Positions 1,111-53,670 of a DNA stretch of 64,000 bases are shown piece by piece. A model generated the notes under the pieces. It did no database searches and was not told the origin of the DNA. It worked only from the letters and a program-made list of their open reading frames with translations. The DNA comes from Macrostomum lignano. Its lineage: Eukaryota. Within the stretch, counting starts at the first letter, position 1. Each line of letters opens with the position of its first letter. The position numbers and the translations under genes were made by a program. The DNA lies in assembly GCA_002269645.1 (NCBI GenBank), contig NIVC01000032.1, positions 1,054,001 to 1,118,000 on the forward strand. Direction: 5' to 3'.

Positions 1111-2536
1111 AGGGTTTAGGGATATGAAAGGTCATTAAACAAGATTAAAGCATTGAGAAGGTAAGCAGGTTTAACAGTGAGGCTTAACAGTGCGGAACAC
1201 CAGCAAACAAGAGATCATGACAGCAAAACAGTCTTTAGTATATTTAGAAGTTAATATTAAATATTATCAGCAAAACGAAAGTTTATAGTACTAAATTCAT
1301 AAATTGATTTATGACTTTTAACTTTAACTTGACTTTTAACAGGTAGATAAAAAGAAATTACCAGATTATACTTTTGCACAGTAAGACGTGGCACTTTATA
1401 ATCAAATAAATGTATAACTTATTAGCTACTGTTTGCTATACATACTTAATTTAAACAAAGTTCGTTAACAAAATGCATAAATAGGTCTGGGTCTGAGAGA
1501 GAAAAAGAAACAGCACGTCAAAATAATTATAAATATTAATCTTACCACATCAAACTTAAATTTAATTTTTACAAGGATTAAGGAATATGATTATTAACAG
1601 AGTTAAATAGAAAAAACTAAAGTACAAAAATTTGAACAGACAGAAAAGTCACCTGACTAGGCTTATTTAATACTTATCGAGTGTTTAAACTTAGCACACA
1701 AATTAACTTTATCAGCAACAATTGTGCCATACAAAAACAAATCACAGTATTAAATTAATAAACATAACAAAATCTAAATTACTTATATTTATTACAATAT
1801 AAAAATACTGCACGAAATATTATAGTTATTGATCGACATATTAAATTGGCCGATAACTGTACATCAAATTATTAATCAACATATACAGACATGTCAGACA
1901 CTTACAAAAATGAATACACGAAGCTAAATTCGGTGTTTAAGAAAGTAAAGGCAAAATGTGAATAAAAAGAGATTTTGCTTTTTTATTATTTCTTTTTGAA
2001 AAAAATGAGTCAAAACAGCCTGACAAACACGGTGACAGATTTTTTATGCACAATGTATTTGTTTCATATGCATCTTGCAAGCTAAATTAGACTATGAGCA
2101 CAGATATACTATATTAAATTTAAATGTTCGCTCTGCACATATCTACTCACTTTCAGTAGCAAAATAAGAATTTTCGACCTAACTTTGCCCTCTCTCCTTA
2201 CTGCTCTCTCATTGGCTGAGCCAGATTGGGACTGTCCCCCCCCCCCTAGGCTGGAGTTTCGTCCGTCTGACTTTGCCCTCTCTCCTTACTGCTCTCTGAT
2301 TGGCTGAGCTAGATTGGGCCTGCTGACAAGTGGAATTACGTCTCTCTCGGCGTTCACTTGTGTACATCGAATTAAATGCTTGCTGTTCATTCTCAACCCT
2401 ATATGCTCATGAGGCGCCGCCAAACCCGAGGAAGGAATGAAAATTTTAGCTTGTCCAATTAAATTTGAGTGACACTACGCAGACAAACTGCTGAAAAAAA
2501 GAGTAGACGTTCTTATGAAACACTGTAGCAAAGTTA

Positions 2537-2949
2537 TTAAGAATCCGCTGTTGCCGCCTCACTGCCGGTTCGCTCTACAAGACGAAAGGCGAAGACTCCA
2601 ATACGAAGGCATCTGAGCCGTTCCTGCTGCTGCTGACAGCGAGAAAATGTTAATCTTAATCGATTCTCGCCCGGCAAGCAGTTACTCAAACCGACTAGAA
2701 ATCGATCGCCGCTAACTGACAATGGCAATTGTCGATGATCGTTTAATAACACGCTGGTCACGTGACACGGACCATCGGATAGCCAACAGTGCAGGCTGAG
2801 CGGTGGCTCTTCGGCACCGCCACTGGCTGGCGCTAGCAGCAGCGATCTGGGCTGCTGGTGGCAGTGGATCAGAGCCAGAACGTGACCGCGTCGAGCGGCT
2901 TCATCAGCGGGTAGGTGAAAATTTGTCGACCAGTGCCGATTGTTGTTCG
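2537..2949 (-). CDS. MPHOSPH8: MPP8-like exon 5 (C-terminal beta-rich domain)
   Basis: Acceptor TTGTTTTATCCAG, phase 1; stop at 2537. Confidence 0.8.
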
Positions 2950-5639
2950 CTGGATAAAACAAGTCGGATGGGTTTGAGCGTCGGATGGGATTAGAAGCCG
3001 ATTAAAAACCGCATAGCAACAGCCTAGAAACCACATAGCAACAGCATAGAAACCGCATAGCAACAGCATAGAAACCGCATAGCAACAGCCTAAAACGCCC
3101 AGCAACAGCCTAGAAATCACATGGCAACAGCCTAGAAACCGTATAGCAACAGCCTAGAAACCCCATAGCAACAGCCTAGAAACCGCATAGCAACAGCCTA
3201 GAACGCCTAGAAACAGTCTAGAACGCCTAGCAACAGCTTAGAACGCCTAGCAACAGCCTACAACGCATAGCAACAGCCTAGAAACCGCATAGCAACAGCC
3301 TAAAAACCGCGTAGCAACAGCCTAGAAACGCATAGCAACAGCCTAGAAACCCCATAGCAACAGCCTAGAAACCACATAGCAACAGCCTAGAAACCGCATG
3401 GCCCTGGAAAAACCAAAGAAAGCTCACAGCTATCCGAGTCGACTGCAGCCGCAGCACTCCCAGGCCGAACATAATGCGGAGCGAACAGCAGCACAGCCGG
3501 TTCGAATCCAAATCTACCCAACCGATCAATCAAAAGATCGTGCATCGATTTGCACACCTGCCCAGCATAGCGTTGCAATACCAACGCGCTGCGCTGGCAA
3601 GTTTGCTTAGCATAGCGCAACGCTGTTAAATTATCGCGAGAGTCGACAATAGCGGCAAAATCTACGCCACCTTCAGAGCAGAGAGCTTCCACTAGATGAG
3701 GCCGGCGATTACGGATGGCTCTGTAGAGTGCGGAGCTTCTGCAGCCGCCGACGCCGCTGTCGTCGAAGCAACAGTGGTCGGGATCGGCACCGGCAATCAG
3801 CAGGCGATGCACAGTAGGCAGCGAGTCCTGTTCAACCGCCAGCATTAGAGGCGAAGCCGGGCCGAAGCAGGGGTCCGGCGATTGGAAATTCACGTCTAGA
3901 TTCTGCAGGCATTGTTAAAGGATTTCGATAGCAGATAGTTTCTCAGAGCAGATAGCAGATAGACAGTACATGCATGTAAAATAAATGTGAGAAGGCTCAT
4001 GAACTTTCGAGTTTGTGAAGATTCGAGCTTCTGAAGCTTCGAGCTTGTGAAGATTTGAGCTGGTGAAGATTTGAGCTGGTGAAGATTTGAGCTGGTGAAG
4101 ATTCGAGCTGGTGAATATTCGAGCTGGTGAAGGTTCGAGCTGGTGAAGATTTGAGCTGGTGAAGATTCGAGCTTGTGAAGATTCGAGCTGGTGAAGATTC
4201 GAGCTGGTGAATATTCGAGCTGGTGAAGGTTCGAGCTGGTGAAGATTTGAGCTGGTGAAGGTTCGAGCTTGTGAAGATTCGAGCTAGTGAAGATTCGAGC
4301 TTGTGAAGATTTGAGCTGGTGAAGGTTCGAGCTGGTGAAGATTCGAGCTTCTGAAGCTTCGAGCTTGTGAAGATTTGAGCTGGTGAAGATTTGAGCTGGT
4401 GAAGATTTGAGCTGGTGAAGATTCGAGCTGGTGAATATTCGAGCTGGTGAAGGTTCGAGCTGGTGAAGATTTGAGCTGGTGAAGATTCGAGCTTGTGAAG
4501 ATTCGAGCTGGTGAAGATTCGAGCTGGTGAATATTCGAGCTGGTGAAGGTTCGAGCTGGTGAAGATTTGAGCTGGTGAAGGTTCGAGCTTGTGAAGATTC
4601 GAGCTAGTGAAGATTCGAGCTTGTGAAGATTCGAGTTGTGAAAACTACGTCCCCCTAAGGCTACAAGAAAACATCTATCCAATTGGATTTCTAACCTGTC
4701 CATCACAGAACTCCGGTGCTTTAGCCAGCAACAGGTCCACCAGGCAAGCGTGACCACGGCTAGCCGCCAAGCATAGCAGCCGGCGAAAACAGTCTAGCGT
4801 TAATCGCTCCTCAGACGAGACAGCAACTAACGGCACGGAAGCCATCGCTAAGCTGGCCCTACTAAATGATCCGCGAAGCATCAGAGTCCGCTGGACGGCA
4901 AGCCAGTCGCCGCGTTCAACCGCCTGGCACAGCGCCGCAAACGACAAGGGAGCGGAACGACGCCTGCGGCGAAATTGTTGCTTAGCTGACAAAGTCAAGA
5001 CGTCGCCGCCATCAATCCGATCAATATCGCCCGAAACGCTCGGTCTCAGGTGAGCTCTAAACAGTTCAACTTGACTATAGGAAGGCGTCGGCAAATCTAC
5101 GGCTGTTAAGTCGTCAAATTCGTCGATTTCATCGTCGATTTGTTCATCATTTTCAACGCCTTCATCATTGTGTTGTTGTTGTTGCTTTTGTTGCTGCTTG
5201 ATCTGCTTTCGCTTTTGCGTATGAATTCTAGGCTTTTTAGCGGATAAAAGCAAGTTGTTAAGCAAAGATTGCTGCTGCTGTTGTTGTTGCTGCTGTTTAG
5301 GCGGAGTGACTGGGCAGCCAGAGTCGCAACTGGACGCCGAGTTATTAGCGATGACATCCTTGGCAACAACGCTTAAAGCGGCCACAGCGGAAGTTGTCAG
5401 GCCCTGAATGCAATGAGGTTGAAAATAAATGTGTGAGACTAATAGGCTTTATGTCTTGATTATACCTAGTTATACTGCTATTTTATTATGATTTATATAC
5501 ACATCAGTTCAGCTATCTGTCGTAGTATCTGACTGTGTTTGTACGAGTGTCTTAGTGTCTCTGTTTTGTAGTGTCTGTCTGGCTTCTACATTCTGTCTAT
5601 CCTTGTAATGTCTGCCTGTCTGTTTCTGTCAGTCGGTGA

Positions 5640-5701
<62 letters not shown>

Positions 5702-5730
5702 CTATCTATCTGTCTGTCTGTCTGTCTTAG

Positions 5731-5771
<41 letters not shown>

Positions 5772-5774
5772 TAG

Positions 5775-5862
<88 letters not shown>

Positions 5863-7232
5863 ATTTGTCTGTCTGCCTGTCATAAAAAACGCGCCCAGCT
5901 ACCTGAACAGCTGGCCGGCTTTCGTCCATCTCAACGGTGCTAGACGAGCCAACAGAGTTGGCCGCAAAGCAGCTGCCAGTATCCGAGTGGTTCGAATTCG
6001 CATCCACATCATCATCATCATCGTCTTCATAATCAGCCTCACCGGCATCAGCTGTGCAACTTTCGTTATTCAAATCGTCATTGATTTTTTCGGACTCTTC
6101 GAATCGGGACTGGACTGGAGGCTCGGACGAGACGGCTCGAACTGGGACGTCGATTTCGTCATCGTCCAAGTCCGAAGCGGCGCTCTCGCTGTCGCCGTTG
6201 ATTCGACGTCGGCATTTCACACGACTGTAGAGATCGTTAGATCTGAGGAAGGGGGGAGGCGAGAGGAAGTTGATGAGGCGCTTGATGATAAAGAGAGACC
6301 AAGGAAAAGCTCGGATGGCCAAAGGCTCATGAGGCAGCAGGGTATCGATATTATCGATCTGAACAAAGACTCAATAAGGATATTGTCAATCTGAACAAAG
6401 ACTTCAAAAGATAATTAATTGATAAAGACTGTATGAGTAGCCAAAAGCGCCGTAGCCCAGTGGTCCAGTGTGGCGCTCTGGTGTGCCAGCGGCCCAGGCT
6501 CGACTCCAAGTGCAGTCACATTAATTTGGGGCTAAATTGGAATCTCGGCTTGGCTCTGCTCGTGCAATTAACGGCCTTGAGGCCCAACCCCCCAAGGCGC
6601 AGTGAAGTGTACATGCCTAACGATAAATAAAGTTAGGGCCGCTGTGCACTCCTGTGAGTGTGTGCCTGTGCGTATGACTGCGTACGCATCCGCGCGCTTG
6701 TGTGCCTGCTCAGGGGAGTCGGCGGAATAGGCAGCAATGCAATGCAAAACCCTGCCTCTAATTGGCACACCTGCCCAGGTGAATTCAAATTACGTTAGCT
6801 ACAAACCCCAATCCAAACCACAAAGTTCACTTACCTAATATCGATTTTACCCGCTTCTAAATCGTCGAAAAATTTCGTTTTCGACGCGACTAACTGACTA
6901 GCGGGCACGACGTCCCATTTTCGATTGGCATTACGTTTTCTAGAACTGCTACTGGCAGTAGTGTGAGCAGAGCTACCGACGCCACTGCCAGAAGCGACGG
7001 CACCTTTCTGTCGAAATTGTTGCACCAGCTCGGCTACGGAGCTCAGGTTGCTCTCCGGTTCCCAGGTGTCGTGGGCTGACGAATAGTTCTTCCAACGAAC
7101 TTTGAAATGCGCTACGCCATTTTCGAATTTTTCAGCCAACAATTTACCAACGGTGAATAATTGCTGCCTGTTGCTACTAGAAGTAGACGGACTGATTATT
7201 GGCACTTCGTGATCAGCAGTTGATCCATCCAT
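2537..7232 (-). CDS. MPHOSPH8: MPP8-like chromodomain-ankyrin repeat protein (M-phase phosphoprotein 8 / HUSH subunit homologue), 5 exons, 777 aa
   Basis: Model join(7232-6835,6242-5903,5403-4696,3902-3428,2949-2537): all GT-AG, phases 2,0,0,1 consistent, 2334 nt. N-terminal chromodomain ([21 protein letters not shown]), acidic/Q-rich linker, ankyrin repeats ([44 protein letters not shown]) and a C-terminal [17 protein letters not shown]...GENRL...IGVFAFRLV segment matching the human MPP8 C-terminus as recalled (GPCSVQAVVLNDKFQLP...GPNKL...IGAYRV). Confidence 0.8.
3010..3400. repeat. ~22-bp minisatellite (GCATAGCAACAGCCTAGAAACC)n in MPP8-like intron 4
   Basis: Direct repeats fill most of the 478-bp intron. 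Confidence 0.9.
3428..3902 (-). CDS. MPHOSPH8: MPP8-like exon 4 (ankyrin repeats)
   Basis: Acceptor CCTGCAG; donor GTGAGC; [16 protein letters not shown] ankyrin motif. Confidence 0.82.
4005..4640. repeat. 16-bp minisatellite (GAAGATTCGAGCTGGT)n in MPP8-like intron 3
   Basis: About 39 units; related to the array at 11050-11600. Confidence 0.92.
4696..5403 (-). CDS. MPHOSPH8: MPP8-like exon 3 (polyQ linker, first ankyrin repeats)
   Basis: Acceptor CATTCAG; donor CAG|GTTAGA; ankyrin-like motifs. Confidence 0.8.
5570..5880. repeat. (TGTC)n microsatellite in MPP8-like intron 2
   Basis: Long near-perfect tetranucleotide run. Confidence 0.95.
5903..6242 (-). CDS. MPHOSPH8: MPP8-like exon 2 (acidic linker)
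   Basis: Acceptor CCCCCTTCCTCAG; donor CAG|GTAGCT; frame joins exons 1 and 3. Confidence 0.75.
6449..6740 (+). mobile_element. tRNA-derived SINE-like repeat, copy 1 (MPP8-like intron 1)
   Basis: Close match over ~290 bp to 17257-17550; A-box-like TAGCCCAGTGG and B-box-like GGCTCGACTCC at the head. Confidence 0.7.
6835..7232 (-). CDS. MPHOSPH8: MPP8-like exon 1 (chromodomain)
   Basis: ATG at 7232; chromodomain; donor AG|GTAAGT at 6834. Confidence 0.88.
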
Positions 7233-7429
7233 TTTCCCTTTTGGACTTATTTACTCACCTTCAAAGATGAAGGCAGAGTTTTGAAAAATGAACTGGAATT
7301 ACTGATTATCTGTTGTTGTTTTTTAAAGAATTATTGGGTTTTTGTAATTGAAGCTCCACTGAAGCAGAAAAAAAAACAAGCCGATTATATGTCTAAAAAT
7401 TATAGAACCTCTAAGGGATATGTACAGAT

Positions 7430-8200
7430 GTGAGATTGAGAGATTAGAGATAGACTGGGTGAGATTAAAGATAGACTGAGTAAGATTAGGGATAGACTGG
7501 GTAAGATTAGGGATAGACTGGGTAAGATTAGGGATAGACTAGGTGAGCTTAAGGATAGACTGAGTAAGATTAGGGATAGACTGGGTAAGATTAGGGATAG
7601 ACTGGATGAGATTAGGGATAGACTGGGTAAGATTAGGGATAGACTGGGTGAGATTAGGGATAGACTGGGTGAGATTAGGGATAGACTAGGTGAGCTTAAG
7701 GATAGACTGAGTAAGATTAGGGATATACTGGGTGAGAATAGGGATAGACTGGGTAAGATTAGGGATAGACTGGGTGAGATTAGGGATAGAATTGGTGAGA
7801 TTAGGGATAGAATGGTTGAGATTAAAAATAGACTTGGTGAGATTAAGGATACACTGGGTGGGATTAGGGGTAGTATTCTTGAGATTGAGGACACAATTCT
7901 AAAGATAGGAAAAATACTCTAGATATTAGGGTTAAGAACTAGCTCTAGAGATTGGAGATAAAAGTTGATAGATTGGGGATAGAAGTCTATAGATTGTAAA
8001 TAGAAGTCTATAGATTGGGGATAGAAGTCTATAGATTGGGGATATAAGTCTATAGATTTGGGATAGAAGTCTATAGATTTGGGATAGAAGTCTACAGATT
8101 GGGGATAGAAGTCTATAGATTGGGGATAGAAGTCTATAGATTTGGGATAGAAGTCTATAGATTGGGGATAGAAGTCTACAGATTGAAGACAAAGTTTATA
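7430..8200. repeat. Two adjacent 20-21-bp minisatellites (GGGATAGACTGGGTAAGATTA)n and (GGGATAGAAGTCTATAGATTG)n
   Basis: Direct units at 7430-7880 and 7960-8200, both containing GGGATAGA; upstream of the MPP8-like ATG. Confidence 0.9.
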
Positions 8201-8754
8201 GACTGGGGACAGAGTTATTGGAGATATACAGGAAAGCACCTATTACACTATCAATAGTAAAAACAACAAAATAAAGCTAAGGCTCAATCACAATAGAAAA
8301 AAAGAATCAACGCAATTTCCGCAATATATGTAATATATATTTTATTATTGTTAAATACTATTGTTTGTAAACTACCAAGCCGAACTGGAGGGAAGAATAA
8401 ACTTTTAATTGTAGATTTAATTTGATTTGATAAGAGCAGAAATTGTGTTTAAATAATAGGATTATCTAATTCATCTAATACAGAATAACAAAACACAAAG
8501 TTAGATAAAAAAGCTACTGACTAAACTAATAAAACTCGACAGAGGAAAAATTGACACTGGGAAGAAAATGAACAAAAAATATCCCAAAAATATAGGGAGG
8601 AAACGAGGACTTCAAAGCGAGACTATAACAAACGGAGAGAAAAATAAATATTGGTGAAAACAATGAGCTCTTGAAACAGACTAACAACAAGGCTTACAAC
8701 TATTAATATGCATGCATGATAGCTACGAGTACTTCACAAGGATTCTAAGAGCAG

Positions 8755-9200
8755 TCAAATTGGCGCCAAACATTGATTCAAATTGGCGCCAAACAGTGAT
8801 TCAAATTGGCGCCAAACAGTGATTCAAATTGGCGCCAAACATTGATTCAGATTGGCGCCAAACATTGATTCAAATTGGCGCCAAACATTGATTAAAATTG
8901 GCGCCAGTGATTCAAATTGGCGCCAAACAGTGATTCAAATTGGTGCCAAACAGTGATTCAAATTGGCGCCAAACAATAATTTAAATTGGCGCCATTCATT
9001 AGTTCAAAATAGCGCCAAACATTTATTCAAAATAGCGCCAAACATTAATTCAAAATAGCGCCAAACAATGATTCAAAATAGCGCCAAACAAGATTCAAAT
9101 TGGCGCCAAAAATTGATTCAAAAAGCGCCAAACAATGATTCGAACTAGCATCCGAAATGATTTAAAAGTGACGCTAAACAGTGACTTAAATTGGCGCTAA
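8755..9200. repeat. 23-bp minisatellite (AAATTGGCGCCAAACATTGATTC)n
   Basis: About 19 units downstream of the DHTKD1 stop codon. Confidence 0.9.
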
Positions 9201-9444
9201 ACAGCTGACAAAACTTGTATAAAATATCAAGTTAGCTATTAAGGATAAAATACTTTTTTAACACATAGGAAGACAATAATTAAGAATACTGCTCGAATTT
9301 AAGCTAAATAAAACAACCCATACACTCATATTAATTATCGTATTACTAGACTGAAAACAAAATAATTCATAAATAAACAATAAATTTCAATAGAGATTAA
9401 CAAGAAGTCCAATAAGATATCCAAAATCGCGACTCGATAAAAAA

Positions 9445-9813
9445 TTATGAAAAGAAAGCGTCAGTCATAAGTCGGTCAGCTTCACTTCGATGCAGCGAAC
9501 CGATACCAACAGCCGGTGTTGCCAGCTCCTTTCTGCCGGCATAGCGCACACCAGTCAGGCCCAGAAGGTTCCTAATTCTGGCCTCAACAAAGGACCACGC
9601 GCCCATGTTGCGAGGCTCCTCTTGGCTCCAGACCAGTTCCCTAGCGTTGGGATATTTGGCTAGTTGAGCGTGCACATCGTGCAGCGGGAACGGGGTCAGC
9701 TGTTCCACGCGGATTATAGCGGCGTCTTTTATCGACTTGGCTTTGCGATATTCGTCCAACGCGTAATAGTGCTTGCCTGTGCACAGGATTATCCGCTTAG
9801 GGCTTTGTGGCGC
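9445..9813 (-). CDS. DHTKD1: DHTKD1 exon 6
   Basis: In-frame acceptor CATCCGCAG|GCG; [17 protein letters not shown]; stop TAA. Confidence 0.88.
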   Translation of the reverse strand, partial: APQSPKRIILCTGKHYYALDEYRKAKSIKDAAIIRVEQLTPFPLHDVHAQLAKYPNARELVWSQEEPRNMGAWSFVEARIRNLLGLTGVRYAGRKELATPAVGIGSLHRSEADRLMTDAFFS

Positions 9814-12800
9814 CTGCGGATGGTTGATTCGTTTTCGAATGTACATTCTGGGGCAGGGGGAAACGGCTCAGTGTACATTCTGGGGCAGGGGGAAACGGCT
9901 CAGTGTACATTCTGGGGCAGGGGGAAACGGCTCAGTGTACATTCTGGGGCAGGGGGAAACGGCTCAGTGTACATTCTGGGGCAGGGGGAAACGGCTCAGT
10001 GTACATTCTGGGGCAGGGGGAAACGGCTCAGTATACATTCTGGGGCAGGGGGAAACGGCTCAATGTACATTCTGGGGCAGGGGGAAACGGCTCAGTGTAC
10101 ATTCTGGGGCAGGGGGAAACGGCTCAATGTACATTCTGGGGCAGGGGGAAACGGCTCAATGTACATTCTGGGGCAGGGGGAAACGGCTCAATGTACATTC
10201 TGGGGCAGGGGGAAACGGCTCAGTCTACATTCTGGGGCAGGGGGAAACGGCTCAATGTACATTCTGGGGCAGAGGGGAACGGCTCAGTGTACATTCTGGG
10301 GCAGAGGGGAACGGCTCAGTCTACATTCTGGGGCAGGGGGAAACGGCTCAATGTACATTCTGGGGCAGAGGGGAACGGCTCAGTGTACATTCTGGGGCAG
10401 AGGGGAACGGCTCAGTCTACATTCTGGGGCAGGGGGAAACGGCTCAATGAACATTCTGGGGCAGAGGGGAACGGCTCAGTGTACATTCTGGGGCAGAGGG
10501 GAACGGCTCAGTGTAGAGTCACATTCTGTGCAGAGGGCTTAAACGGCTCAGTGTACAGTCATTCTGGAGGCAGGGGGAAGGGCTCTGTACATGTATTCTA
10601 GCGCAGAGGGGAACGGCTCAAAGTACTTTCTTTCTGAATTCTGGGGCAGGGTAAATTCAAGAACAGGGACACAAAGATGTAAAGATCAAATCTCACAGAG
10701 GGGTCGGGCAGAACATGCTGAAAGTGTCGACCAGGTGCGAGCTCTTCCAAACTGGACACTGCAGCCGGGTGTCTTAGCAAAGTCTTCGGGCTGACAACAA
10801 TTAGAGGCTTACGAAATTTCCTACCAATTAGTTGGCGACGAAGCAGGTGAAAGTACTGAGCAGGCGTGGTCGGGTTGACAACCTTGGTAGAAAGGTAATT
10901 AATTTAAAGTCTCCGTTAGATACTAAATCTTAGTTTTCAGCGAATTGCTATCGATGTCGTTTTCTACAGCTAAAAGCTAAAAAAGTTAAAGTAGAAAAAA
11001 TCTTGCTAATTAGTGCTTTTTCGAGCTGGCTGAAACTTAGAGTCTGTGAAGCTACGGGCCTGTGAAGATTCAAGTTTGTGAAGATTCAAGTTGTGAAGAT
11101 TCAAGTTGTGAAGATTCAAGTTGTGAAGATTCGAGTTTGTGAAGATTCAAGTTGTGAAGATTCAAGTTTGCGAAGAATCGAGTTTATGAAGATTCAAGTT
11201 GTGAAGATTCGAGTTTGTGAAGATTCAAGTTGTGAAGATTCGAGTTTGTGAAGATTCAAGTTGTGAAGATTCGAGTTTGTGAATATTCAAGTTGTGAAGA
11301 TTCAAGTTTGCGAAGAATCGAGTTTATGAAGATTCAAGTTTGCGAAGAATCGAGTTTATGAAGATTCGAGTTTGTGAATATTCGAGTTTATGAAGATTCG
11401 AGTTTGTGAATATTCGAGTTTGGGAAGAATCGAGTTTAGGAAGAATCGAGTTTGGGAAGAATCGAGTTTGTGAATATTCGAGTTTATGAAGATTCGAGTT
11501 TGTGAATATTCGAGTTTGGGAAGAATCGAGTTTAGGAAGAATCGAGTTTGGGAAGAATCGAGTTCGTGAAGATTCGAGTTTGTGAAGTTTCGAGCTTATT
11601 TAAGTCCCCTAATTAATCGAAGTAATCCCGCCGTCGAATATTGACAAAAATATTTGTCAAATTTAAAGAGAACTCAACTTAGACAACAGCCTGAATAGGT
11701 GCAGCTAATCTACCTGCATATTAACCATATCGGTGTCGGGTTCAACCTCGCTAGAATCAGTCAGCTGAAGCCAACGTTCGATCCGGCAGCTGGAGTGCTC
11801 CGGCCCAGCTCCATCGTAACCGTGAGGCAGCAACAGCACCAGGCCATTCTGATGGCCCCACTTAGCCTCAGCCGAGCCAATATAAGTGTCAATAATAATT
11901 TGAGCACCGTTGAAGAAGTCACCGAACTGAGCTTCCCAGATGCACAGCCGATCGGGCTGATCCATGGCCATGCCGAATTCGAATCCTAGCACAGCCTCTT
12001 CGGATAAAATGCTGTTGGCGATCTCCAGCCTACCGGAGGCATCGGCCAGCCTATTCAACGGTACATCGATAGCGCCGCTAGCCTGATCAACTAGCATAGC
12101 ATGCCGCTGACTGAATGTACCCCTACCAACATCTTGGCCGCTGATTCTACAATGCCTACCCTGCAGCATCAGTGAGCCGATGGCCAGACACTCGGCCGTG
12201 GCCCAATCCATACCCGTTGCTAGGCGCTCTAACCGCTTAGCAACGTGCCCTTTAACTAACGTAGGATGCAATTGAAATGTTGAATCTTTAGTTGCTACAG
12301 AAGCGGTTGCTATGCTTTTCAATTTGTCAGTGTCGAATCCGGTATCCCAAACTGTTAATCGCCGTTCAGGCGGCCTGACTGAACTCCAGTCACCTTTGCG
12401 AACGTACTGATCGATTTTGACAGATTCAGACAGGGCCAATTCATCTGAGAGATGCTGGCGCCATTTGGAGCAAGAGTCAGCCACTTGGGATTGCAGATTG
12501 GAGTCAAGGCTGCTCACGAATCTGGATTGGAAGACAATGATTGAGAGAGTGAAGATGTTTGATCTTTTAGTTAACTGTTTTCTTATCTACTGCTAATAAA
12601 CCTTCAGGACATTATTGAGGCAATTATCTTAACTTCACCCTGTATTATCCATATTTTAGCGCCAAAACTGACATTTTTACTGATATTTTGGCGCCAAAAA
12701 CAGACACCATTTCGCTGATACTTTGGCGCCAAAAACAGATACCTCTGCTGATATTTTGGCGCCAAAAACAAACACCATATCGCTGATTCTTTGGCGCCAG

Positions 12801-15800
12801 AAACAAACACCATATCGCTGATTCTTTGGCGCCAGAAACAAACACCATATCGCTGATTCTTTGGCGCCAGAAACAAACACCATATCGCTGATTCTTTGGC
12901 GCCAGAAACAAACACCATATCGCTGATTCTTTGGCGCCAGAAACAAACACCATATCGCTGATTCTTTGGCGCCAGAAACAAACACCATATCGCTGATTCT
13001 TTGGCGCCAGAAACAAACACCATATCGCTGATTCTTTGGCGCCAGAAACAAACACCATATCGCTGATTCTTTGGCGCCAGAAACAAACACCATATCGCTG
13101 ATTCTTTGGCGCCAGAAACAAACACCATATCGCTGATTCTTTGGCGCCAGAAACAAACACCATATCGCTGATTCTTTGGCGCCAGAAACAAACACCATAT
13201 CGCTGATTCTTTGGCGCCAGAAACAAACACCATATCGCTGATTCTTTGGCGCCAGAAACAAACACTATATCGCTGATTCTTTGGCGCCAAAAACAAACAC
13301 CATATCGCTGATATTTTGGCCCCAAAAACAGACTTTTATTTGCTAATTTCTGGCGCCAAAAACAGACAACTCTTTGAATATTTTAGCGCCAAAAGACATT
13401 TTAATATTGATATTTTTCAGCCAAAATAATACAACTTTTTGTTGATATTTTGGCGTTAAAAGTGACACTATTAATATTATTTTGGCACCAAAATGGACAC
13501 TTTTATTGATAGTTAGGTGTCAAAAAAGACAACTCATCACTGCTATTTTGAAGACTTTAAACGCCAAAAATGAACCCGATTTGAATTATTTGATTCTATT
13601 GATATGATGATTCAAATTAATAATATCTAGCGCTTTTAAGTGAAGACACTACTAATAGTTTTTACTACGACTAGAGCTATTTTCTATATTATACTAACAG
13701 AGAGAAGCCTTACTTATCAGCGGTAGATTGCCTCGCCCTAATCGCTTTGTACATCAGCGGCTGAGTGAAGCTGGGCTCGTCCAATTCGTTGTGACCCCAG
13801 CGCCTGTAGCAGACCAGATTTATAAACACGTCCCGGCGGAATACCTGCCGATAGTCCAGGGCCAAAGTTGCCGCTCTGTACACGTCAATCGGATTGTCGG
13901 CGTTAACGTGAATGACGGGCACAGCTAGGCTTTTGCCAACGTCGGTGCAGTGACGGAAACTGGAGCCGCGGTCCGACGGGGTTGTGTAACCAACCTGCGG
14001 TTTGGACGGGAGCAGATAGATCCATTGATAGAAAAACACAACCAGAAGCAGAAGACAACAGAAACTGTCTTCTGAAACAGAAACAGTAAAAGACAACAGA
14101 AAAACACAACCAGAAGCAGAAGACAACAGAAAAACACAACCAGAAAAAAAAGACAACAGAAAAACACAACCAGAAGCAGAAGACAACAGAGAAACAACCA
14201 GAAGCAGAAGAAAACAGAAAAAACAACGTACTAAAAACAGAAGCCAACAGAAAAACAGCCAAAAGCAAAAGACAGCAGTAAAACACAACCGGAAGCAGAA
14301 GAGAACAGAAAAATACAAGGTACTAGAAGCAGAAGACAATAGAAAAACACAACTAAAAGCAGAAGACAGCAGAGAAACACAACGCACCAGAAACAGATGC
14401 CAACAGAGAAACAGAAGCAGAAGACAACAGAAAAACACAACCGGAAGCAAAAGCCAACAGAAAAACACAATCGGAAGCAGAAGACAACAGAAATACAACC
14501 AGAAGCAGAATCCAACAGAAAAACACAACCAAAAGCAGAAGACAACTGAAAAACACAACCAGAAGCAGAAGACAACAGAAAAACGCTACCGGAAGCAAAG
14601 GCTAACAGAAATACACAATCGGAAGCAAAAAACAACAGAAAAACACAAGAAGAAGCAGAAAAAAAAACAGAAAAAACAACCAGAAGCAGAAGACAACAGA
14701 GAACCACAACCAGAAGCAGGAGCCAACAAAAAACAACCAGAAGAAAAAGACAATAGAAAAACACAACCAGAAAAAAGACAACAGAAAAACACAACCAAAA
14801 GCAGAAGACAACAGAAAAACACAATCAGAAGCAGAAGACAACAGAAAAACACAACCAGAATCAGAAGACAATGGAAAAAAACAACCCGGAAACAGAAGAC
14901 AACAGAAAAAAAACCAGAAGCAGAAGAAAACAGAAAAAAACAACGTACTAGAAGCAGAAGCCAACAGAAAAACAGCCAAAAGCAGAAGACAGCAGTAAAA
15001 CACAACCGGAAGCAGAAGAGAACAGAAAAATACAAGGTACTAGAAGCAGAAGACAATAGAACACAACTAAAAGCAGAAGACAGCAGAAAACATAGCCAGA
15101 AGCAGAAGACAGCAGAAAAACAACCAGAAGCAGAAGACAGTGTAAGACAGCAGAGCACACCTACCAAAAATAGCAATCAGCTCACCTGATTATTAACCAC
15201 AATATGAATAGTGCCACCAATGCTGTAGTGAGGAACCTCGGCCATAGCCAGGGTCTCGTACACAATGCCTTGGCCAACAATAGACGCGTCACCGTGAATT
15301 AACACGCAACAGGTGAAATCGCCATTTCTACTACTACTACTGCTACCCTCAGTAGTATCCTCACGATAATCTCCTTCACCAAGTCGTTGCATTTTTGATC
15401 GAGTCTTACCAGCAGCCACTGGTACGCAAGCTTCTAAATGAGACGGATTAGGAATTAACGATACCGTAATGCTCTTCTCTCCGTAGCGCTTGGCAACAGA
15501 TTGGAAATAATGCGAGAACGTGTCGCCAGTGAAGCCTTCGGTTTCAGTGCAACCGTCTGGAAATTCGCTCAACCCGCGCATCTTTCTAAAGTACAGATGA
15601 GCCGGCAAGTCCAATAGTACGGTTAATAGATTATTCCGACCCCGATGAGCAATGCCAACAATCATATTGCTAAGGCCAGCGGTTGAGCAACCGCGCTCAA
15701 TCAGCCTATCCATAGCAACTAATAAGCTTTCGCAGCCTTCGCCGCCGTAGCGTTTTACCGAACCGAATTTTGCGCCAAGAAATTCGTCAACTATTTGAGA

Positions 15801-16912
15801 CTGAGACATCACTTCGGCCATGCGGACAAGCTCCGTTCTGCAATTTGTTATCAGTTTTATTGTCCCCTGTTTTAGCAGAAGCAATTCCATTCAAACTGTT
15901 TGAGGTTGTCTGCTCACCCCCGACTAGCCTTACTTTATGTGCTCAACCTAGCTTAAACGCTACTTGATCTTCTTAGCCTACTCAAATAGCGACTGAACCT
16001 ACTTAATCACTATCTAAACATAGGTGCACTCAATCGCTACTCAACCTACTCAATCGCTACTCAACCTACTCAATCGCTACTCAACCTACTCAATTCGCTA
16101 CTCAACCTACTCAATTCGCTACTCAACCTACTCAATTCGCTACTCAACCTGCTCGATAGCTACATCAACATAATCAATAAGTAGCTACATCAACCTATTC
16201 AATAGCTACCTCAACCTATTCAATAGCTACCTCAACCTACTCAATAGCTACTCAACCTACTTAAATCGCTACTCAACTTACTCAAATCGCTACTCAACAT
16301 ACCTAAACCGCTACTGAACCGATTCAAATCTTTATTAACAACTCACTCATTAGGATTAAACTCCTCTCGACAAGCTTCAAACCGCTTAGCAAACCAGATT
16401 CTCTCCCTCCAATCGGCCAGGTGATCAAATTCGGCAGACAACTGACCGCAATATATTGTTTCTAATTGTTTAGCCAAATCTCCAAGTCGAGTTGCACAAG
16501 AACTAAAATCTGATGGTATCGAATCGACAGAGACAGCTTCATCAGGATTAATTCTATTTAACAGATTCGACAGTTCCTTGTCAACTTCTTTGCTAGCTAA
16601 GCCAAGAGGATCAAGAGCCGCCTGACGATGCCCGTGACGCCGATAAAGATCAATTAATCGCCTAGCAACGGGATGGCAACCGAGCGACAAAGACTCATTA
16701 GCCGCCTGATGGGGAATGGTATCAGCAGGCGGTTCATCTCTGTGGCCATAGACAAATCCTGCGGTGCGGTAGTGCCGGATGTGGCCATAGACAAATCCTG
16801 CCGTGCGGGAGTGCCGGATGTGGCCATAGACAAATCCTGCCGTGCGGTAGTACCGCATTTGTATACAGCAAGCCAGTCGAGTCAAACGACTGCACATTGC
16901 CAGCAGAGGCAT
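9445..16912 (-). CDS. DHTKD1: 2-oxoadipate dehydrogenase E1 component, mitochondrial (DHTKD1), 6 exons, 953 aa
   Basis: Model join(16912-16347,15837-15186,13994-13714,12521-11714,10882-10697,9813-9445): all GT-AG, phases consistent, 2862 nt. Motifs [30 protein letters not shown] (ThDP-binding), [68 protein letters not shown]-terminal T.GFVYG and C-terminal PAVGIG favour DHTKD1 over OGDH. Confidence 0.93.
9838..10640. repeat. 32-bp minisatellite in DHTKD1 intron 5
   Basis: (GTACATTCTGGGGCAGGGGGAAACGGCTCAGT)n, about 21 good units plus degenerate ones. Confidence 0.95.
10697..10882 (-). CDS. DHTKD1: DHTKD1 exon 5
   Basis: [33 protein letters not shown]; donor GTGAGA. Confidence 0.92.
11050..11600. 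repeat. 15-16-bp minisatellite in DHTKD1 intron 4
   Basis: (GAAGATTCGAGTTTGT)n; same family as 4005-4640. Confidence 0.92.
11714..12521 (-). CDS. DHTKD1: DHTKD1 exon 4
   Basis: Transketolase pyrimidine-binding-type region; acceptor TCCAG, donor GTAGAT. Confidence 0.92.
12650..13560. repeat. 35-bp minisatellite in DHTKD1 intron 3
   Basis: (GCGCCAGAAACAAACACCATATCGCTGATTCTTTG)n; near-perfect core at ~12770-13290 with decaying flanks. Confidence 0.95.
13714..13994 (-). CDS. DHTKD1: DHTKD1 exon 3
   Basis: VGYTTP ... WGHNELDEP; acceptor CCGCAG, donor GTAAGG. Confidence 0.92.
14030..15165. repeat. ~30-bp A-rich minisatellite in DHTKD1 intron 2
   Basis: (CAGAAGCAGAAGACAACAGAAAAACACAAC)n with higher-order blocks (~14220-14370 recurs at ~14940-15080). 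Confidence 0.92.
15186..15837 (-). CDS. DHTKD1: DHTKD1 exon 2
   Basis: KRYGGEG ... IVVNNQ; acceptor TTGCAG, donor GTGAGC. Confidence 0.92.
16030..16320. repeat. 20-21-bp minisatellite in DHTKD1 intron 1
   Basis: (CTACTCAATCGCTACTCAAC)n. Confidence 0.88.
16347..16912 (-). CDS. DHTKD1: DHTKD1 exon 1
   Basis: [16 protein letters not shown] (mitochondrial-leader-like); donor GTGAGT at 16346. Confidence 0.85.
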
Positions 16913-17256
16913 TGCTTTAACCCCGTGCGTGTTTTTTAAAGATGTTTTTCTGTAATATTTTCGCAAAACTACTGTTAGTAGGATAGAAAAAAAGTATTAA
17001 GATGACTGCACATCGGAGATTTCTGGAGTTGAACAGACGAAACGAAGTGGGGGAAGCATGCATTAAAATAACATATTATTTAGTAAAGCTTTAAATGCAC
17101 AGTTTAAATGTTTTCTATGAAATAAACCTCTATTAAAGGCACTTTCAGTTTGACGGGGAAAAAACCTAAATGGGTGACATAGAGAGACTTAGACATGAAG
17201 TTATAGACCAGAAAAGAAAGACCCGGTACGAAAAAGAGAAACAAAGACCTAATGAA

Positions 17257-18941: not shown

Positions 18942-21900
18942 TCATCGAGCAGACACCCTGGCAACTACCACTCGCTTCCGCGTTCCGGAACTAGCAGCGC
19001 TAGGCACAGTGACGGCAGCAGACTTCCTAACGTACACAGGATCAGTCGCTGCAGGTTCAACAGTTGAATTTGAAGACGACGCAGCGGAGGAATCCAATCG
19101 AGCTTTTTTAGTAGCAGATCCGCCATTTTCTTTAGTTCGAATAGCTACCGCCGGTTGTTGCTGTTGCGAGGCGCTGCTGTTCAAAGCTACAAATGCTCGA
19201 AAAACGTTTGGCGATATTTCGTCGTGCAATTTTCGATACAGCGGACCGGCCCCTCTGGTGTTTAACAATACGGGAGTGACTGTCGTTGTTGCAGTTGCTG
19301 CTGCCGCTGCTACTGCGATCGGTTGTTGAACGATAATCTTCTCTTTGGGTACCGTACTTTCTAGTGACTGTTCTTTTGGTTGTTCCTGATTTAGCACCTG
19401 TTGTGCAATAGGCTGCTGCTTTCGTCTATATGGATGGTAAAGCTTTGGATCAGCTGATAAAGGTTTATCTGTTGGCTGAAATCTTGCTCTTTGTTGACTG
19501 CCTATGTCCCCTCTTTTAGTAGACAGTAGATCGGCTTTTGACACTCGAACAACTTGAATGGGATTCGATTGATTATCTAATGAAGGCAGCTGCTGACGCG
19601 AACAAGAAGGATTTGAGTCGGATGGATCGGTGAAATTTTGCATCGACAAAGACGATTGTTGAGTTTCCGATAGAGGAGGAACGACGTTAAAATTAATGTT
19701 GATTGCAGCGTCTGGGTCTACGAGGATATCGGATGCGGCCGATCCTGTGGTTGATGAAGCCTGAAGAGGCTGAGGCATCGGTGGAGACTGCTGTTGCTGG
19801 GCAGATGCAATAATTCTCATTGGTTTGTCGCATTTTCGTTTACGACGATTGTTGGGTTCGATTGATCCACTAGGAGCAACAGATTCGTCTTGCGTCTCTG
19901 CGGCAGAGCCTTTCAATTCGGGCTGTGACCCACTGCTCTGCTGCGTCTCCTGCCCCTGTTGAGCCAAGAAGCCTGCCCAATCAATCTCGCGGGGCGCTAC
20001 AGCTGCAGACGTTGTTTTACGTCGCGAATGCTTTGGCGGCAATTGTGGCTTAACAGAAATCGGATTCGAACTAACGACCACGGTTCGTACAGCAATCGAA
20101 GACTGCGGAGAAGGCAAAAGAGGAGTAGATGAAGGTTCAGGCGTTGTTTCGCCTCCATTAACTGGCAAAGTCATGGAAGTTGAAGATGGTCCAGATTGAA
20201 CTGTAGATTGAACCGGAAGTTGCAGAGCTAATTTACTAAGATGAACTAAAGGATGCTGCTGCTGTTGTTGCGATTGCTGAGCTGGCTTTGGATGATGCGC
20301 CGCTACAGGGTCTACAGGAGTCGACACCGTGCGAATGCCTACCTGACCAACAGCTGGTCCACCATCTTGCAGCTTCCTATAGTAGCGCGAATTTGGCGCG
20401 TCCCAACTGATTGGCGCCGGTGCTGGACTTTTGGGGTGCAACTTTTGGGCAGCAGATATTTGTTGTTGTTGCAATTTCTGCTTCTGTTGTTTCTTCTGCC
20501 GCTCCATAGCAGCTTCGGCGGTTAAGTCTACAATCGGAGTTTCGTGTACAACATTCACCACGTTTACAGCTGGGCGACCCCGACCCCTGTGAGTAGTCGG
20601 GTGAGACTTGCTAGTAGTGGAAGGCTCAACTGCAGGTGCGGCAGATGGAAGTGGCAACTCTGGCAGCGTGAAAGACTCGGCTTCAAGCTCGGCAGCTACC
20701 GGTGGAGTTGGTGGCAACTCGTTATGGTAACTATCGCCAGCAGTACCGGCTAAGGTAGTGTCTTCGCTGCAAACCTCGGCCGAGACTTCGACGCAAGCGT
20801 CCTCTTCAATGTGCTGCGATTCAGAATCTGACGATGAAGAGACGGCTTCGTTGCAGAAGCTCGAATCTGACTTGCGATTATTCTTATCTTGCTTGCTGCT
20901 GCTGCTAGTAGAGGTCTTATTAGTGATGTTGTCCTTCTTTTTTCTTTCACTAATAGTGACACTATGGACAACAGGAGACGCAGAAACTCTTGTGCGACTG
21001 GATGAACTGCTTCTGTTATTAGGACTTGTTGAAGACTTATCAGACGACTGGTTTTGAGTCAGATTCTTTAGATCCCCCGCAGGATGTCGACGCTTTCCAA
21101 GACGTTTAATGTCAGTAGCAGCAGGTGCAGATGGTGTCGCTGGGTTACAGCTTGCAGCTACAGATGTTGCAGTCGATGACCTTTGCTGCCTTGAGTTGCT
21201 TACTGACCTTTGCTGCTTTTGCTGATATGCCTGTTTTGTCTTCGGTTCCTGTTTATTCTGTTGTTCAAGCTTCCCTGATTGCTTTGGATTCTTCGGGTGT
21301 TCCTGTTTCTTCTTCAGCTCCTTTTCCTGTTTATCTTGATTCTTCGATTGTTGCGGCTTCTTTTGCTGCTCTGACTTCTGCTGTTCTAGCTTCTTCTGCT
21401 GCTCTTGCTTCTTTTGCTGTTCTTGCTTCTTTTGCTGCTCTTGCTTCTGCTGTTCTAGCTTCTTCTGCTGCTCTTGCTTCTTTTGCTGTTCTTGCTTCTT
21501 TTGCTGCTCTAGCTTTTTTTGCTGTTCTTGCTTCTTTTGCTGTTCTTGCTTCTTTTGCTGCTCTTGCTTCTTTTGCTGTTCTTGCTTCTTTTGCTGCTCT
21601 TGCTTCTTTTGCTGTTCTTGCTTCTTTTGCTGTTCTTGCTTCTTTTGCTGTTCTTGCTTCTTTTGCTGTTCTTGCTTCTTTTGCTGCTCTTGCTTCTTCT
21701 GCTGTTCTAGCTTCTGCTGCTCTTGCTTCTTTTGCTGCTCTTGCTTCTTTTGCTGCTCTTGCTTCCTTTGCTGTTCTTGCTTCTTCTGCTGCTCTAGCTT
21801 ATTTTGCTGTTCTTGCTTCTTTTGCTGTTCTTGCTTCTTTTGCTGTTCTTGCTTCTTTTGCTGTTCTTGCTTCTTTTGCTGTTCTTGCTTCTTTTGCTGT

Positions 21901-22250
21901 TCTTGCTTCTTTTGCTGCTCTTGCTTCTTCTGTTGTTGTAGCTTCTTTTGTTGTTCTAGTTTCTGCTGCTCTTGTTCTTTTTGCTTCTGCTGCTCCTGCC
22001 TCCGCTGCTCTTCGTGCCAATGCTTTCTCTGCTTTTTGTGCTTCTGCTCCTGCTTTTGCTGCCTGACTTTCTTTTTCGACACACTTAGTGGGCTAACCGA
22101 AACAACAGGACGGGAAATTCTACTGCCACTGCGAAGCTGCTTGTGACGATTCTGTTGAATTGCTTTGCTTTTTTGTCGCATGATTCTGCTTTTAACAGCT
22201 GTTGTTTTTTTTGGCTGGATGACTGTCTTTTTGGCATGCAAAGAGTTTAA
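18942..22250 (-). CDS. Large low-complexity Q/S/P-rich protein exon with a (QQKKQE)n coding repeat; probably nuclear, function unknown
   Basis: 3.3-kb stop-free frame in AT-rich flanks; basic clusters, AT-hook-like RGRGRP and an IVDLT motif. 5' boundary (start or acceptor) uncertain. Confidence 0.65.
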   Translation of the reverse strand, partial: LNSLHAKKTVIQPKKTTAVKSRIMRQKSKAIQQNRHKQLRSGSRISRPVVSVSPLSVSKKKVRQQKQEQKHKKQRKHWHEEQRRQEQQKQKEQEQQKLEQQKKLQQQKKQEQQKKQEQQKKQEQQKKQEQQKKQEQQKKQEQQKKQEQQNKLEQQKKQEQQRKQEQQKKQEQQKKQEQQKLEQQKKQEQQKKQEQQKKQEQQKKQEQQKKQEQQKKQEQQKKQEQQKKQEQQKKQEQQKKQEQQKKLEQQKKQEQQKKQEQQKKLEQQKQEQQKKQEQQKKQEQQKKLEQQKSEQQKKPQQSKNQDKQEKELKKKQEHPKNPKQSGKLEQQNKQEPKTKQAYQQKQQRSVSNSRQQRSSTATSVAASCNPATPSAPAATDIKRLGKRRHPAGDLKNLTQNQSSDKSSTSPNNRSSSSSRTRVSASPVVHSVTISERKKKDNITNKTSTSSSSKQDKNNRKSDSSFCNEAVSSSSDSESQHIEEDACVEVSAEVCSEDTTLAGTAGDSYHNELPPTPPVAAELEAESFTLPELPLPSAAPAVEPSTTSKSHPTTHRGRGRPAVNVVNVVHETPIVDLTAEAAMERQKKQQKQKLQQQQISAAQKLHPKSPAPAPISWDAPNSRYYRKLQDGGPAVGQVGIRTVSTPVDPVAAHHPKPAQQSQQQQQHPLVHLSKLALQLPVQSTVQSGPSSTSMTLPVNGGETTPEPSSTPLLPSPQSSIAVRTVVVSSNPISVKPQLPPKHSRRKTTSAAVAPREIDWAGFLAQQGQETQQSSGSQPELKGSAAETQDESVAPSGSIEPNNRRKRKCDKPMRIIASAQQQQSPPMPQPLQASSTTGSAASDILVDPDAAININFNVVPPLSETQQSSLSMQNFTDPSDSNPSCSRQQLPSLDNQSNPIQVVRVSKADLLSTKRGDIGSQQRARFQPTDKPLSADPKLYHPYRRKQQPIAQQVLNQEQPKEQSLESTVPKEKIIVQQPIAVAAAAATATTTVTPVLLNTRGAGPLYRKLHDEISPNVFRAFVALNSSASQQQQPAVAIRTKENGGSATKKARLDSSAASSSNSTVEPAATDPVYVRKSAAVTVPSAASSGTRKRVVVARVSAR
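21370..21990 (-). repeat. 18-bp coding minisatellite encoding QQKKQE
   Basis: (CAGCAAAAGAAGCAAGAA)n on the minus strand, in frame throughout. Confidence 0.9.
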
Positions 22251-51750: not shown

Positions 51751-52021
51751 GCACGCGAAGGTGTATTCAGCACGCCAGTGAAGTATGAGACAGACCAGGC
51801 CTAAGGGCTACGGTCTGCGATGCTTCACGCAGGTCAAGGCTGGAGAGGGAGGTCTGCACCCGCTATTTGCCGCTGGCAGCCACAGACCCCCCCCTCACGC
51901 TGTTTCACAAGTCGACCCAGGGTACTCGTCCCCGCGTGTGTTCAAGGCAGACCCTAGGGCTGCTGGACAGACTGGGCTCCGACGCTGGCGACCCATCCAG
52001 TGGCTTCGGCCGAATTTGGGT
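51751..52021 (+). ncRNA. Candidate HDV-like self-cleaving ribozyme at the 5' end of LOA copy B
   Basis: P1 GCACGCG (51751-57)/CGCGTGT (51933-39) with G1.U wobble; P2 ACCCA/TGGGT; P3 GGG/CCC; L3 TACTCGT; P1.1 AC/GT; P4 hairpin; J4/2 CGAAT with C at 52011. Confidence 0.75.
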
Positions 52022-53668: not shown

Positions 53669-53670
53669 TA

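Follow-up and report, generated by a model that had tools for sequence, protein, structure and literature searches.

The best-described relative of the gene considered here is human MPP8 (MPHOSPH8), a core subunit of the vertebrate HUSH complex, which silences retroelements, and its reader of methylated histones. Residues 528-860 of human MPP8 are enough for HUSH assembly; the SPOC domain of TASOR contacts the MPP8 ankyrin surface together with a peptide at 536-562, TASOR DomI contacts the MPP8 beta-sandwich, the triple mutant F548G/R741A/F813A is inactive in HUSH, and the chromodomain binds peptides of SETDB1, ATF7IP, G9a and GLP (PMC7618375). HUSH is still called "vertebrate-specific" (PMC7532188, PMC10915761), and flies and nematodes are said to have no MPP8 orthologue (bioRxiv 10.1101/2021.11.29.466909). 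One study, in the sections that deal with them, reports TASOR-like proteins of the DUF3715-SPOC-DomI type "throughout metazoa", and those sections name no flatworm in their account of the invertebrate proteins (PMC10578480); our literature search found nothing specific on either MPP8 or HUSH for flatworms or for bilaterians as a whole. Here we analyze a window, that is, a stretch of 64,000 nucleotides of the flatworm Macrostomum lignano (GenBank assembly GCA_002269645.1, contig NIVC01000032.1, forward-strand positions 1,054,001 to 1,118,000; coordinates below count from its first letter), in which an earlier note, made from the sequence alone, had proposed a complete MPP8-like gene at 2537..7232. 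The evidence presented below makes it likely that this is a functional, single-transcript gene encoding the flatworm orthologue of MPP8/MPHOSPH8.

The window locus is confirmed as a real, intact five-exon gene of M. lignano. It lies on the minus strand, with its ATG at 7230-7232 and its TAA at 2537-2539, and a three-frame reading of the reverse complement of 2400-7300 shows that the five exons join in one frame across four introns, all of which are GT..AG; the resulting coding sequence of 2334 nt encodes 777 aa with zero internal stops or frameshifts, and an in-frame stop lies six codons 5' of the ATG. The phase-consistent five-exon model of the earlier note is thus reproduced with canonical splice sites and the identical length of 777 codons, and its description of the gene as complete holds, the frame being open from ATG to TAA and the exon structure recurring at a duplicate locus (below). 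Exon 1 (6835..7232; residues 1-132 plus 2 nt) encodes the chromodomain (7008-7160), with the aromatic-cage codons at 7155-7157 (F26), 7092-7094 (W47) and 7083-7085 (Y50), and the first half of a linker motif (6835-6917). The second half of this motif (6203-6242) opens exon 2 (5903..6242) and is followed by acidic linker predicted to be disordered (predicted local distance difference test score, pLDDT, <50). Exon 3 (4696..5403) encodes poly-Q/acidic linker, a putative pre-ankyrin peptide (5047-5076) and the first ankyrin repeats (4696-4950), and exon 4 (3428..3902) the rest of the ankyrin repeats (3573-3902), a long connecting helix (~3504-3596) and the start of the beta-sandwich. The PINIT-like beta-sandwich and the stop codon occupy exon 5 (2537..2949), whose landmarks are HWSTNF (2918-2935), the conserved block GPCHV..VLLND..QLP (2723-2773) and IGVFAFRL (~2564-2602).

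Intron 1 (6243..6834, 592 nt) shares 79% identity with its counterpart in the duplicate locus, and the other three consist largely of tandem repeats: a (TGTC)n array at 5609-5881 in intron 2 (5404..5902, 499 nt), a 16-bp array at 4006-4635 in intron 3 (3903..4695, 793 nt) and a 22-bp array at 3006-3399 in intron 4 (2950..3427, 478 nt). For exon 4, a donor GTAGAT at 3517, which would give a protein of 747 aa, was rejected in favor of GTGAGC at 3427 (777 aa), because a paralogue conserves the 30 residues that the latter adds, and the RNA-based model of the duplicate locus includes them as well.

Among the M. lignano proteins returned by a search of 5.8 billion proteins is BOX15_Mlig020555g1, a 780-aa "hypothetical protein" (94% identity, 100% coverage) encoded on NIVC01001341.1 of the same assembly. 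This duplicate locus has the same five exons and splice sites, with exons 96-99% and introns 79-90% identical to those of the window copy; the duplicated block corresponds to 5780-11745 of the NIVC01001341.1 stretch against 2537-7232 of the window, with flanks that are 85-94% identical, and the tandem arrays of introns 2, 3 and 4 make these differ in length (window/duplicate: 499/1175, 793/339 and 478/1518 nt). The two coding sequences differ by 27 synonymous and 15 non-synonymous changes, and the resulting dN/dS of 0.17 (Nei-Gojobori) shows that purifying selection acts on both copies. In GenBank this assembly carries an annotation (Mlig_3_7) that was built from genome-guided RNA-seq transcript assemblies (PMC5730564), and the 780-aa model derived in this way joins the same five exons, so that the chromodomain and ankyrin exons belong to one mRNA at the twin locus, as the earlier note's reading of a single gene had supposed.

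These data bear directly on whether the model might be an artefact, in that the locus is a pseudogene or that adjacent chromodomain and ankyrin genes were fused by mistake, which we regard as very improbable. The transcript support comes from the twin locus and not from the window locus itself, another public model of the window locus (UniRef A0A1I8GI69, 670 aa) has partly different junctions, and M. lignano is known to have polycistronic, trans-spliced transcripts (PMC5730564), all of which would favor such an artefact. The uninterrupted frame, the canonical splice sites, the low dN/dS against the duplicate and the RNA-seq-derived joining of the exons all oppose it, as do two more distant Macrostomum or Macrostomum-like sequences that keep chromodomain, ankyrin repeats and C-terminal domain in the same order. 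The first of these is a paralogue, BOX15_Mlig014748g4 (754 aa, 41% identical), encoded by a single uninterrupted open reading frame on NIVC01000921.1 (8001-10265 of the stretch); it keeps the chromodomain, the pre-ankyrin peptide (AELLRAHL), the ankyrin repeats and the beta-sandwich, and has lost the FFDDLE..DLYSRVK linker motif. The second is a third Macrostomum-like MPP8 homologue on the 4.5-kb Logan contig DRR639838_137542 (60-2672), which carries chromodomain, motif, ankyrin repeats and C-terminal domain in that order; its C half is only 28% identical and its linker motif nearly identical, and its pieces lie in different frames, indicating introns or frameshifts at positions unlike those of the window gene. 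Duplication of the gene together with an intronless paralogue sets Macrostomum apart from the other invertebrate MPP8-like proteins. The intronless paralogue may be an old retrogene derived from an MPP8 gene, a curious thing to find given that mammalian HUSH targets intronless retrocopies.

The N-terminal part of the protein is a chromodomain of MPP8 type. Pfam Chromo matches residues 26-76 with E 4.5e-13, and the best matches in the PDB are human MPP8 chromodomains (9H77, 3QO2 and 3LWE; E ~1e-9, 41 bits vs 36 bits for CBX5), with the chromodomains of CBX5, Clr4 and CDYL ranking below them at E 2e-8 to 1e-5. F26, W47 and Y50 align with the aromatic-cage residues of the human MPP8 structures, which we take to be F59, W80 and Y83 in human numbering, so that the cage that looked intact in the earlier note indeed falls on the cage positions of human MPP8. 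The chromodomain fold and aromatic cage are also common to HP1/CBX-type readers (CBX5, Clr4, CDYL); the window protein is distinguished from the HP1 and SUV39 types by being without a chromoshadow or SET domain and by a C half that is MPP8-specific. Our AlphaFold2 models were made on the duplicate-locus protein (94% identical overall and 98% over the C half) and not on the spliced window protein. In the full-length model the chromodomain is predicted with pLDDT >90 and the C-terminal half is folded, and the roughly 300 residues between them (83-385), which carry poly-Q and acidic runs, are disordered (pLDDT <50) apart from one short predicted helix at 120-126; this agrees with the low-complexity linker noted earlier. 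Chromodomain, linker, ankyrin repeats, long helix and beta-sandwich could thus all be located, in the order that defines MPP8.

It is the C-terminal half that ties the protein to MPP8 most specifically. Pfam provides Ank_2, Ank and Ank_3 matches at ~499-584 and is without a model for the MPP8 C-terminal domain; PF24521, which appears on fish MPP8, was considered as such a model and rejected, being a KRIT1 ankyrin model that matches below threshold. BLASTP against fish MPP8 gives three colinear segments, namely the chromodomain (3e-9), the pre-ankyrin plus ankyrin region (398-580; 1e-3) and the C-terminal 65 residues (2e-5). To avoid circularity, hidden Markov models (HMMs) were built from 20 non-Macrostomum MPP8(-like) sequences and tested in a set of 2004 sequences; the C-half model matches the window protein with 53.2 bits (E 2.5e-15), against 5.5 bits at most for 2000 shuffled versions of the protein. 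This score is made up of an ankyrin piece and a beta-domain piece, the latter alone reaching 23 bits (independent E-value 3.6e-6; 23-27 bits over the profiles built without Macrostomum). The AlphaFold2 model of the C half, made from a 15-row alignment with no templates, has a pLDDT of 84 and a predicted template-modelling score (pTM) of 0.84, and consists of helix pairs 6-15/18-38, 54-66/70-83, 105-111/115-123 and 145-151/155-165 plus a helix at 181-188, followed by a 27-residue helix (190-216) and a nine-strand sandwich. A Foldseek search of the PDB with this model ranks first all four chains of 8QFB, in which the C-terminal domain of human MPP8 was solved by crystallography (E 5e-16 to 5e-15), with a target-normalised TM score of 0.75-0.80 over 336-379 aligned columns that take in ankyrin repeats, beta-sandwich and the whole 8QFB chain; the next matches are DARPins, ten orders of magnitude behind (E 6e-6 or worse) and covering only the ankyrin part, or half of the model. 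The ankyrin stack and the double-length helix of 8QFB, which has five repeats, are likewise present in this model. The human strings that the earlier note had quoted (SALHFAK, DFSTDF, GPCSV..VVLND..QLP) are all in the 8QFB chain, which contains NSALHFAKQ, GPDFSTDFNYK and GPCSVQAVVLNDKFQLPV, aligned with TALRYAK, HWSTNF and GPCHV..VLLND..QLP of the window protein, and the predicted C-terminal fold superposes on 8QFB as that reading would have it.

Chromodomains and ankyrin repeats are both promiscuous modules, other combinations of the two exist (plant cpSRP43 is an example), and the pairwise identity to MPP8 is low, and one could on these grounds suppose a convergent chromodomain-plus-ankyrin protein unrelated to MPP8. 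This explanation is effectively refuted by the presence of the family-specific beta-sandwich, which matches by both sequence and fold and is found in only ~90 proteins among 1.84 billion, and by a domain order, a putative pre-ankyrin peptide and an invertebrate linker motif in common with MPP8-like proteins.

The distribution of the family supports orthology as well. In the forward search of 5.8 billion proteins the first non-Macrostomum matches of the whole protein are fish MPP8. An exhaustive HMMER search of 1.84 billion representative sequences with a profile running from the last ankyrin repeat to the C-terminus found 90 proteins at E <=1e-3, and the C-terminal domain therefore marks a narrow family. 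Twenty of these 90 were looked up for name and species, and every full-length match among those looked up with a name or species on record is hagfish MPP8 or an invertebrate protein, recorded as "M-phase phosphoprotein 8(-like)" or unnamed; a 290-aa fragment of lamprey MPP8 was also matched. The invertebrates are Lineus, Gigantopelta, Biomphalaria, Batillaria, Nucella, Mercenaria, Dreissena, Potamilus, Sinanodonta, Magallana, Lottia, Lingula, Capitella, Saccoglossus, the mite Brevipalpus and the centipede Strigamia, and the Macrostomum-type sequences are the only flatworm-like ones among the profile matches identified. Apart from two short fragments, a homologue search with the C-terminal-domain alignment yielded just one protein, a partial Tetranychus 'MPP8', probably owing to a word-index limit. 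The arthropod MPP8-like proteins with the family's C-terminal domain thus come from Brevipalpus obovatus, Tetranychus urticae (partial) and Strigamia maritima, and because mites and a centipede have them, the absence from Drosophila stated in the literature is a loss within arthropods. A neighbour-joining tree of the C halves places the vertebrates with Saccoglossus and the lophotrochozoans together, with the Macrostomum copies on one long branch, a topology that fits vertical descent, fast flatworm evolution and local duplication.

Sequence, profile, fold and phylogeny, with database searches run in the forward direction, therefore back the earlier note's identification of a true MPP8 orthologue; the rarity it implied was overstated, since NCBI "MPP8-like" names already exist in molluscs, a brachiopod, a nemertean, a hemichordate and mites, in many invertebrate RefSeq sets, and the TASOR-like proteins are presented as pan-metazoan in the relevant sections of PMC10578480. 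The gene model itself is already in GenBank, unnamed, and is an ordinary orthologue identifiable by BLAST. More broadly, the alignments and profile matches show an MPP8 family, with a C module of predicted TASOR-binding type, that is found in Deuterostomia, in Lophotrochozoa, to which a flatworm can now be added, and in some arthropods; given this wide spread, absence from the classic invertebrate models reflects loss and not late invention.

A comparison with the known systems shows what has been kept and what has changed. With human and vertebrate MPP8 (3QO2/3LWE/9H77 and 8QFB) the window protein shares the order and number of domains, the F/W/Y cage, the correspondences TALRYAK/SALHFAK and WSTNF/FSTDF, the pattern GPCxV..LND..QLP and a C-terminal strand of the form hxhxAaxhxL. 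It differs in its identity of only ~25% in the folded C half, in extra loops that interrupt the first ankyrin repeat and the beta-sandwich (the latter at ~625-645 and 677-700, low pLDDT), and in a linker that is poly-Q/acidic where that of human MPP8 is K/E/S-rich. Architecture, linker motif and C-terminal domain are common to the window protein and the invertebrate MPP8-like proteins, among them those of Lingula anatina (XP_013386278), Saccoglossus kowalevskii (XP_002739805), Lineus longissimus (XP_064627542), Gigantopelta aegis (XP_041354288), Mercenaria (XP_045198058) and Capitella (ELU04569), and also Biomphalaria and Dreissena, with the arthropods including Brevipalpus, Tetranychus (partial) and Strigamia; the Macrostomum branch is much the longer one, with 21-25% identity to the others compared with ~35-50% among the other invertebrate proteins. 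Finally, the MPP8 beta-sandwich has the topology of a PINIT domain (PMC7618375), and hence that of the window protein does too; the protein is not an E3 ligase.

The conservation of a motif in the linker is the least expected finding of the analysis. It occupies residues 121-142 (within a wider block, 106-146), spans the exon 1/2 junction, and was described in the earlier note as possibly specific to the lineage, which does not stand: the motif is shared with 11 invertebrate MPP8-like proteins (Lineus, Gigantopelta, Saccoglossus, Lingula, Batillaria, Mercenaria, Dreissena, Capitella, Biomphalaria, Magallana and Sinanodonta) and is lacking in the vertebrates examined and in the intronless paralogue. 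Pattern searches and alignments place the invertebrate block, K-D-T-F-W-K-D-L-E-x-G-x-[IV]-[ND]-x(4-9)-D-[ML]-Y-S-[KR]-[IV]-K, 30-60 residues past the chromodomain; its consensus is K-D-T-F-W-K-D-L-E-x-G-x-I-N-x(4)-D-M-Y-S-K-V-K, Macrostomum has FF instead of FW, and the pattern that includes Macrostomum is F-[FW]-x-D-L-E-x-G-x-[IV]-x(4-9)-D-[LM]-Y-S-[KR]-[IV]-K. The residues F, G, D, Y, S and K are invariant across the MPP8-like proteins carrying the motif, which is the most conserved linker element of the nemertean, mollusc, brachiopod, annelid and hemichordate proteins; Strigamia carries a degenerate copy. The motif, FFDDLE..DLYSRVK in the window protein, is absent from the vertebrate MPP8 proteins tested by pattern or alignment, and none was seen in the hagfish sequence. 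A PDB search with a motif profile gave zero meaningful matches, and a homologue search with the motif alignment returned only three short motif-bearing fragments, again probably because of a word-index limit. In the AlphaFold2 model the helix at 120-126 is predicted with pLDDT ~67 amid disordered sequence. Judged by its pattern of conservation, the motif behaves like a short linear docking motif, one that would have been present in the bilaterian ancestor and have disappeared along the stem of the vertebrates. Docking of a further partner is its most probable role, and that vertebrate MPP8 dropped this site is speculation. The motif would in any case offer a handle for finding a partner that is invisible to vertebrate work.

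How the protein might act can be proposed by analogy with human MPP8 (PMC7618375, PMC7532188). Its chromodomain would read trimethyl-lysine in an ARKS-like context, either trimethylated lysine 9 of histone H3 (H3K9me3) or H3K9-like sites of H3K9 methyltransferase subunits, and its ankyrin/PINIT-like module would dock on the SPOC-DomI region of a TASOR-like scaffold. As expected of an orthologue, it would then tether, and help to spread, an H3K9me3-based silencing complex on transcribed repeats. The contact sites were compared by mapping human residues as 8QFB chain position + 524. The pre-ankyrin peptide at 356-365 aligns with KLEDFQKHL so that F361 falls on F548 (VELFRAHL vs LEDFQKHL), in a short, low-confidence region with 30 extra residues before the ankyrin repeats.

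Several observations weigh against the identification of the gene as an MPP8 orthologue acting in this way. Over its C half the protein is no more than 21-26% identical to any MPP8 from outside Macrostomum; a single-sequence phmmer search of the PDB with the C half gives 8QFB at E 0.57, which is not significant; the AlphaFold2 alignment held vertebrate MPP8 rows, so that the predicted fold match is not fully independent; and our literature search returned zero reports of MPP8 binding or silencing assays in any invertebrate. Moreover, two of the three residues altered in the human triple mutant are replaced in the window protein, R741 by A (FEPAVLL) and F813 by R (NDHRQLP). These positions vary in other invertebrate MPP8-like proteins too (K/T/R/E and V/E/R/Q/A, respectively), and the variation speaks against strict conservation of the interface, not against family membership; from the alignment we read the replacements as probable co-evolution of the interface rather than its loss, yet they leave a real gap.

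That gap is the opening for a different account of the same orthologue, in which an MPP8-family protein works without HUSH. It might, for example, read methyl-lysine on its own and link H3K9 methyltransferases to chromatin, or serve in the DNA-repair or cell-cycle functions described for MPP8, with its C module on some other partner. We think this unlikely. Besides the replaced TASOR-DomI contact residues, the long Macrostomum branch is in keeping with it, as are activities of human MPP8 reported to be independent of HUSH, namely the binding of methyltransferase-related peptides by its chromodomain (PMC7618375) and a reported role in non-homologous end joining (PMC13643101). It leaves unaccounted for that the entire TASOR-binding half (the putative F548-equivalent peptide, the ankyrin stack and the PINIT-like domain) has been kept under purifying selection, and that TASOR-like proteins with the MPP8-binding SPOC-DomI pair are reported across Metazoa in the sections of PMC10578480 concerned with them; the R741 and F813 sites, varying as they do in other invertebrates, may co-evolve with the partner. 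The names MPHOSPH8, FAM208A, TASOR, PPHLN1, MORC2 and SETDB1 were not found in the supplementary tables of the M. lignano transcriptome paper, a result that bears on the names used there only.

Returning to the reading of the gene as a HUSH-type component, from which the earlier note had supposed a HUSH-like retroelement defence in this lineage, we tentatively entertain, at somewhat below even confidence, that MPP8 and the pan-metazoan TASOR-like proteins together point to a surveillance module that dates to the bilaterian ancestor and was kept in an early-branching flatworm, the ancestral MPP8 having carried the docking motif FWxDLExG..DMYSKVK that was lost in vertebrates. If this is true, a HUSH-like system would be at work in M. 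lignano against intronless long interspersed nuclear elements (LINEs) and transgenes, silencing both, and the paralogue without introns would be a retrogene that had either evaded this system or become part of it. M. lignano is amenable to RNA interference and stable transgenesis (PMC5730564) and could serve to ask whether the intron-dependent discrimination of self from non-self by HUSH is ancient; on the practical side, if transgenes without introns are silenced, constructs for this animal would have to be designed accordingly. The value of the gene is that of an entry point to HUSH-like silencing in a transgenic invertebrate, useful rather than surprising.

The upstream same-strand neighbor of the MPP8-like gene is a gene for a 2-oxoglutarate-dehydrogenase-type E1 (minus strand), with exons at 11705-12517 and 15177-15890 and probably at 13710-16966 (Transket_pyr, E 2.4e-33; E1_dh, E 2.1e-9); its introns are likewise repeat-filled. 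Farther along on the minus strand, a single open reading frame of 1119 aa (18942-22301) has a long low-complexity block of (KQEQQK)n type and serine/proline-rich regions, and gave zero Pfam matches. A tRNA-like stretch in intron 1 (6449-6507, plus strand; GCCGTAGCCCAGTGG...GGCTCGACTCC), of which there is one copy in the window, was dropped as a candidate, being called by neither ARAGORN nor Rfam.

Minisatellite arrays with units of 4-32 bp are numerous in the first 12 kb of the window, both in introns and between genes (759-1112, 3006-3399, 4006-4635, 5609-5881, 7440-8213, 8755-9203, 9840-10619 and 11061-11594), and the array at 11061-11594, whose unit is TGTGAAGATTCGAGTT, is related to that of intron 3 with its 16-bp unit TTCGAGCTGGTGAAGA. 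An apparently intact non-LTR (long terminal repeat) retrotransposon lies on the plus strand at 52326-56916, with a 322-aa ORF1-like frame (52326-53294) and an ORF2 (53665-56916; 1083 aa) that has endonuclease (Exo_endo_phos_2), reverse transcriptase and RNase H domains; this is the type of element that a HUSH-like system would be expected to target. LINE-type fragments are found at 33914-36683 (minus strand; reverse transcriptase and endonuclease pieces by Pfam) and 57482-58723 (minus strand; a reverse transcriptase piece by Pfam), and, recognized as reverse transcriptase-like by eye only, at 47142-48198 (plus strand) and 51011-51754 (minus strand). These LINE-type fragments correspond in position to the blocks of high GC content in the window (52-62% GC).

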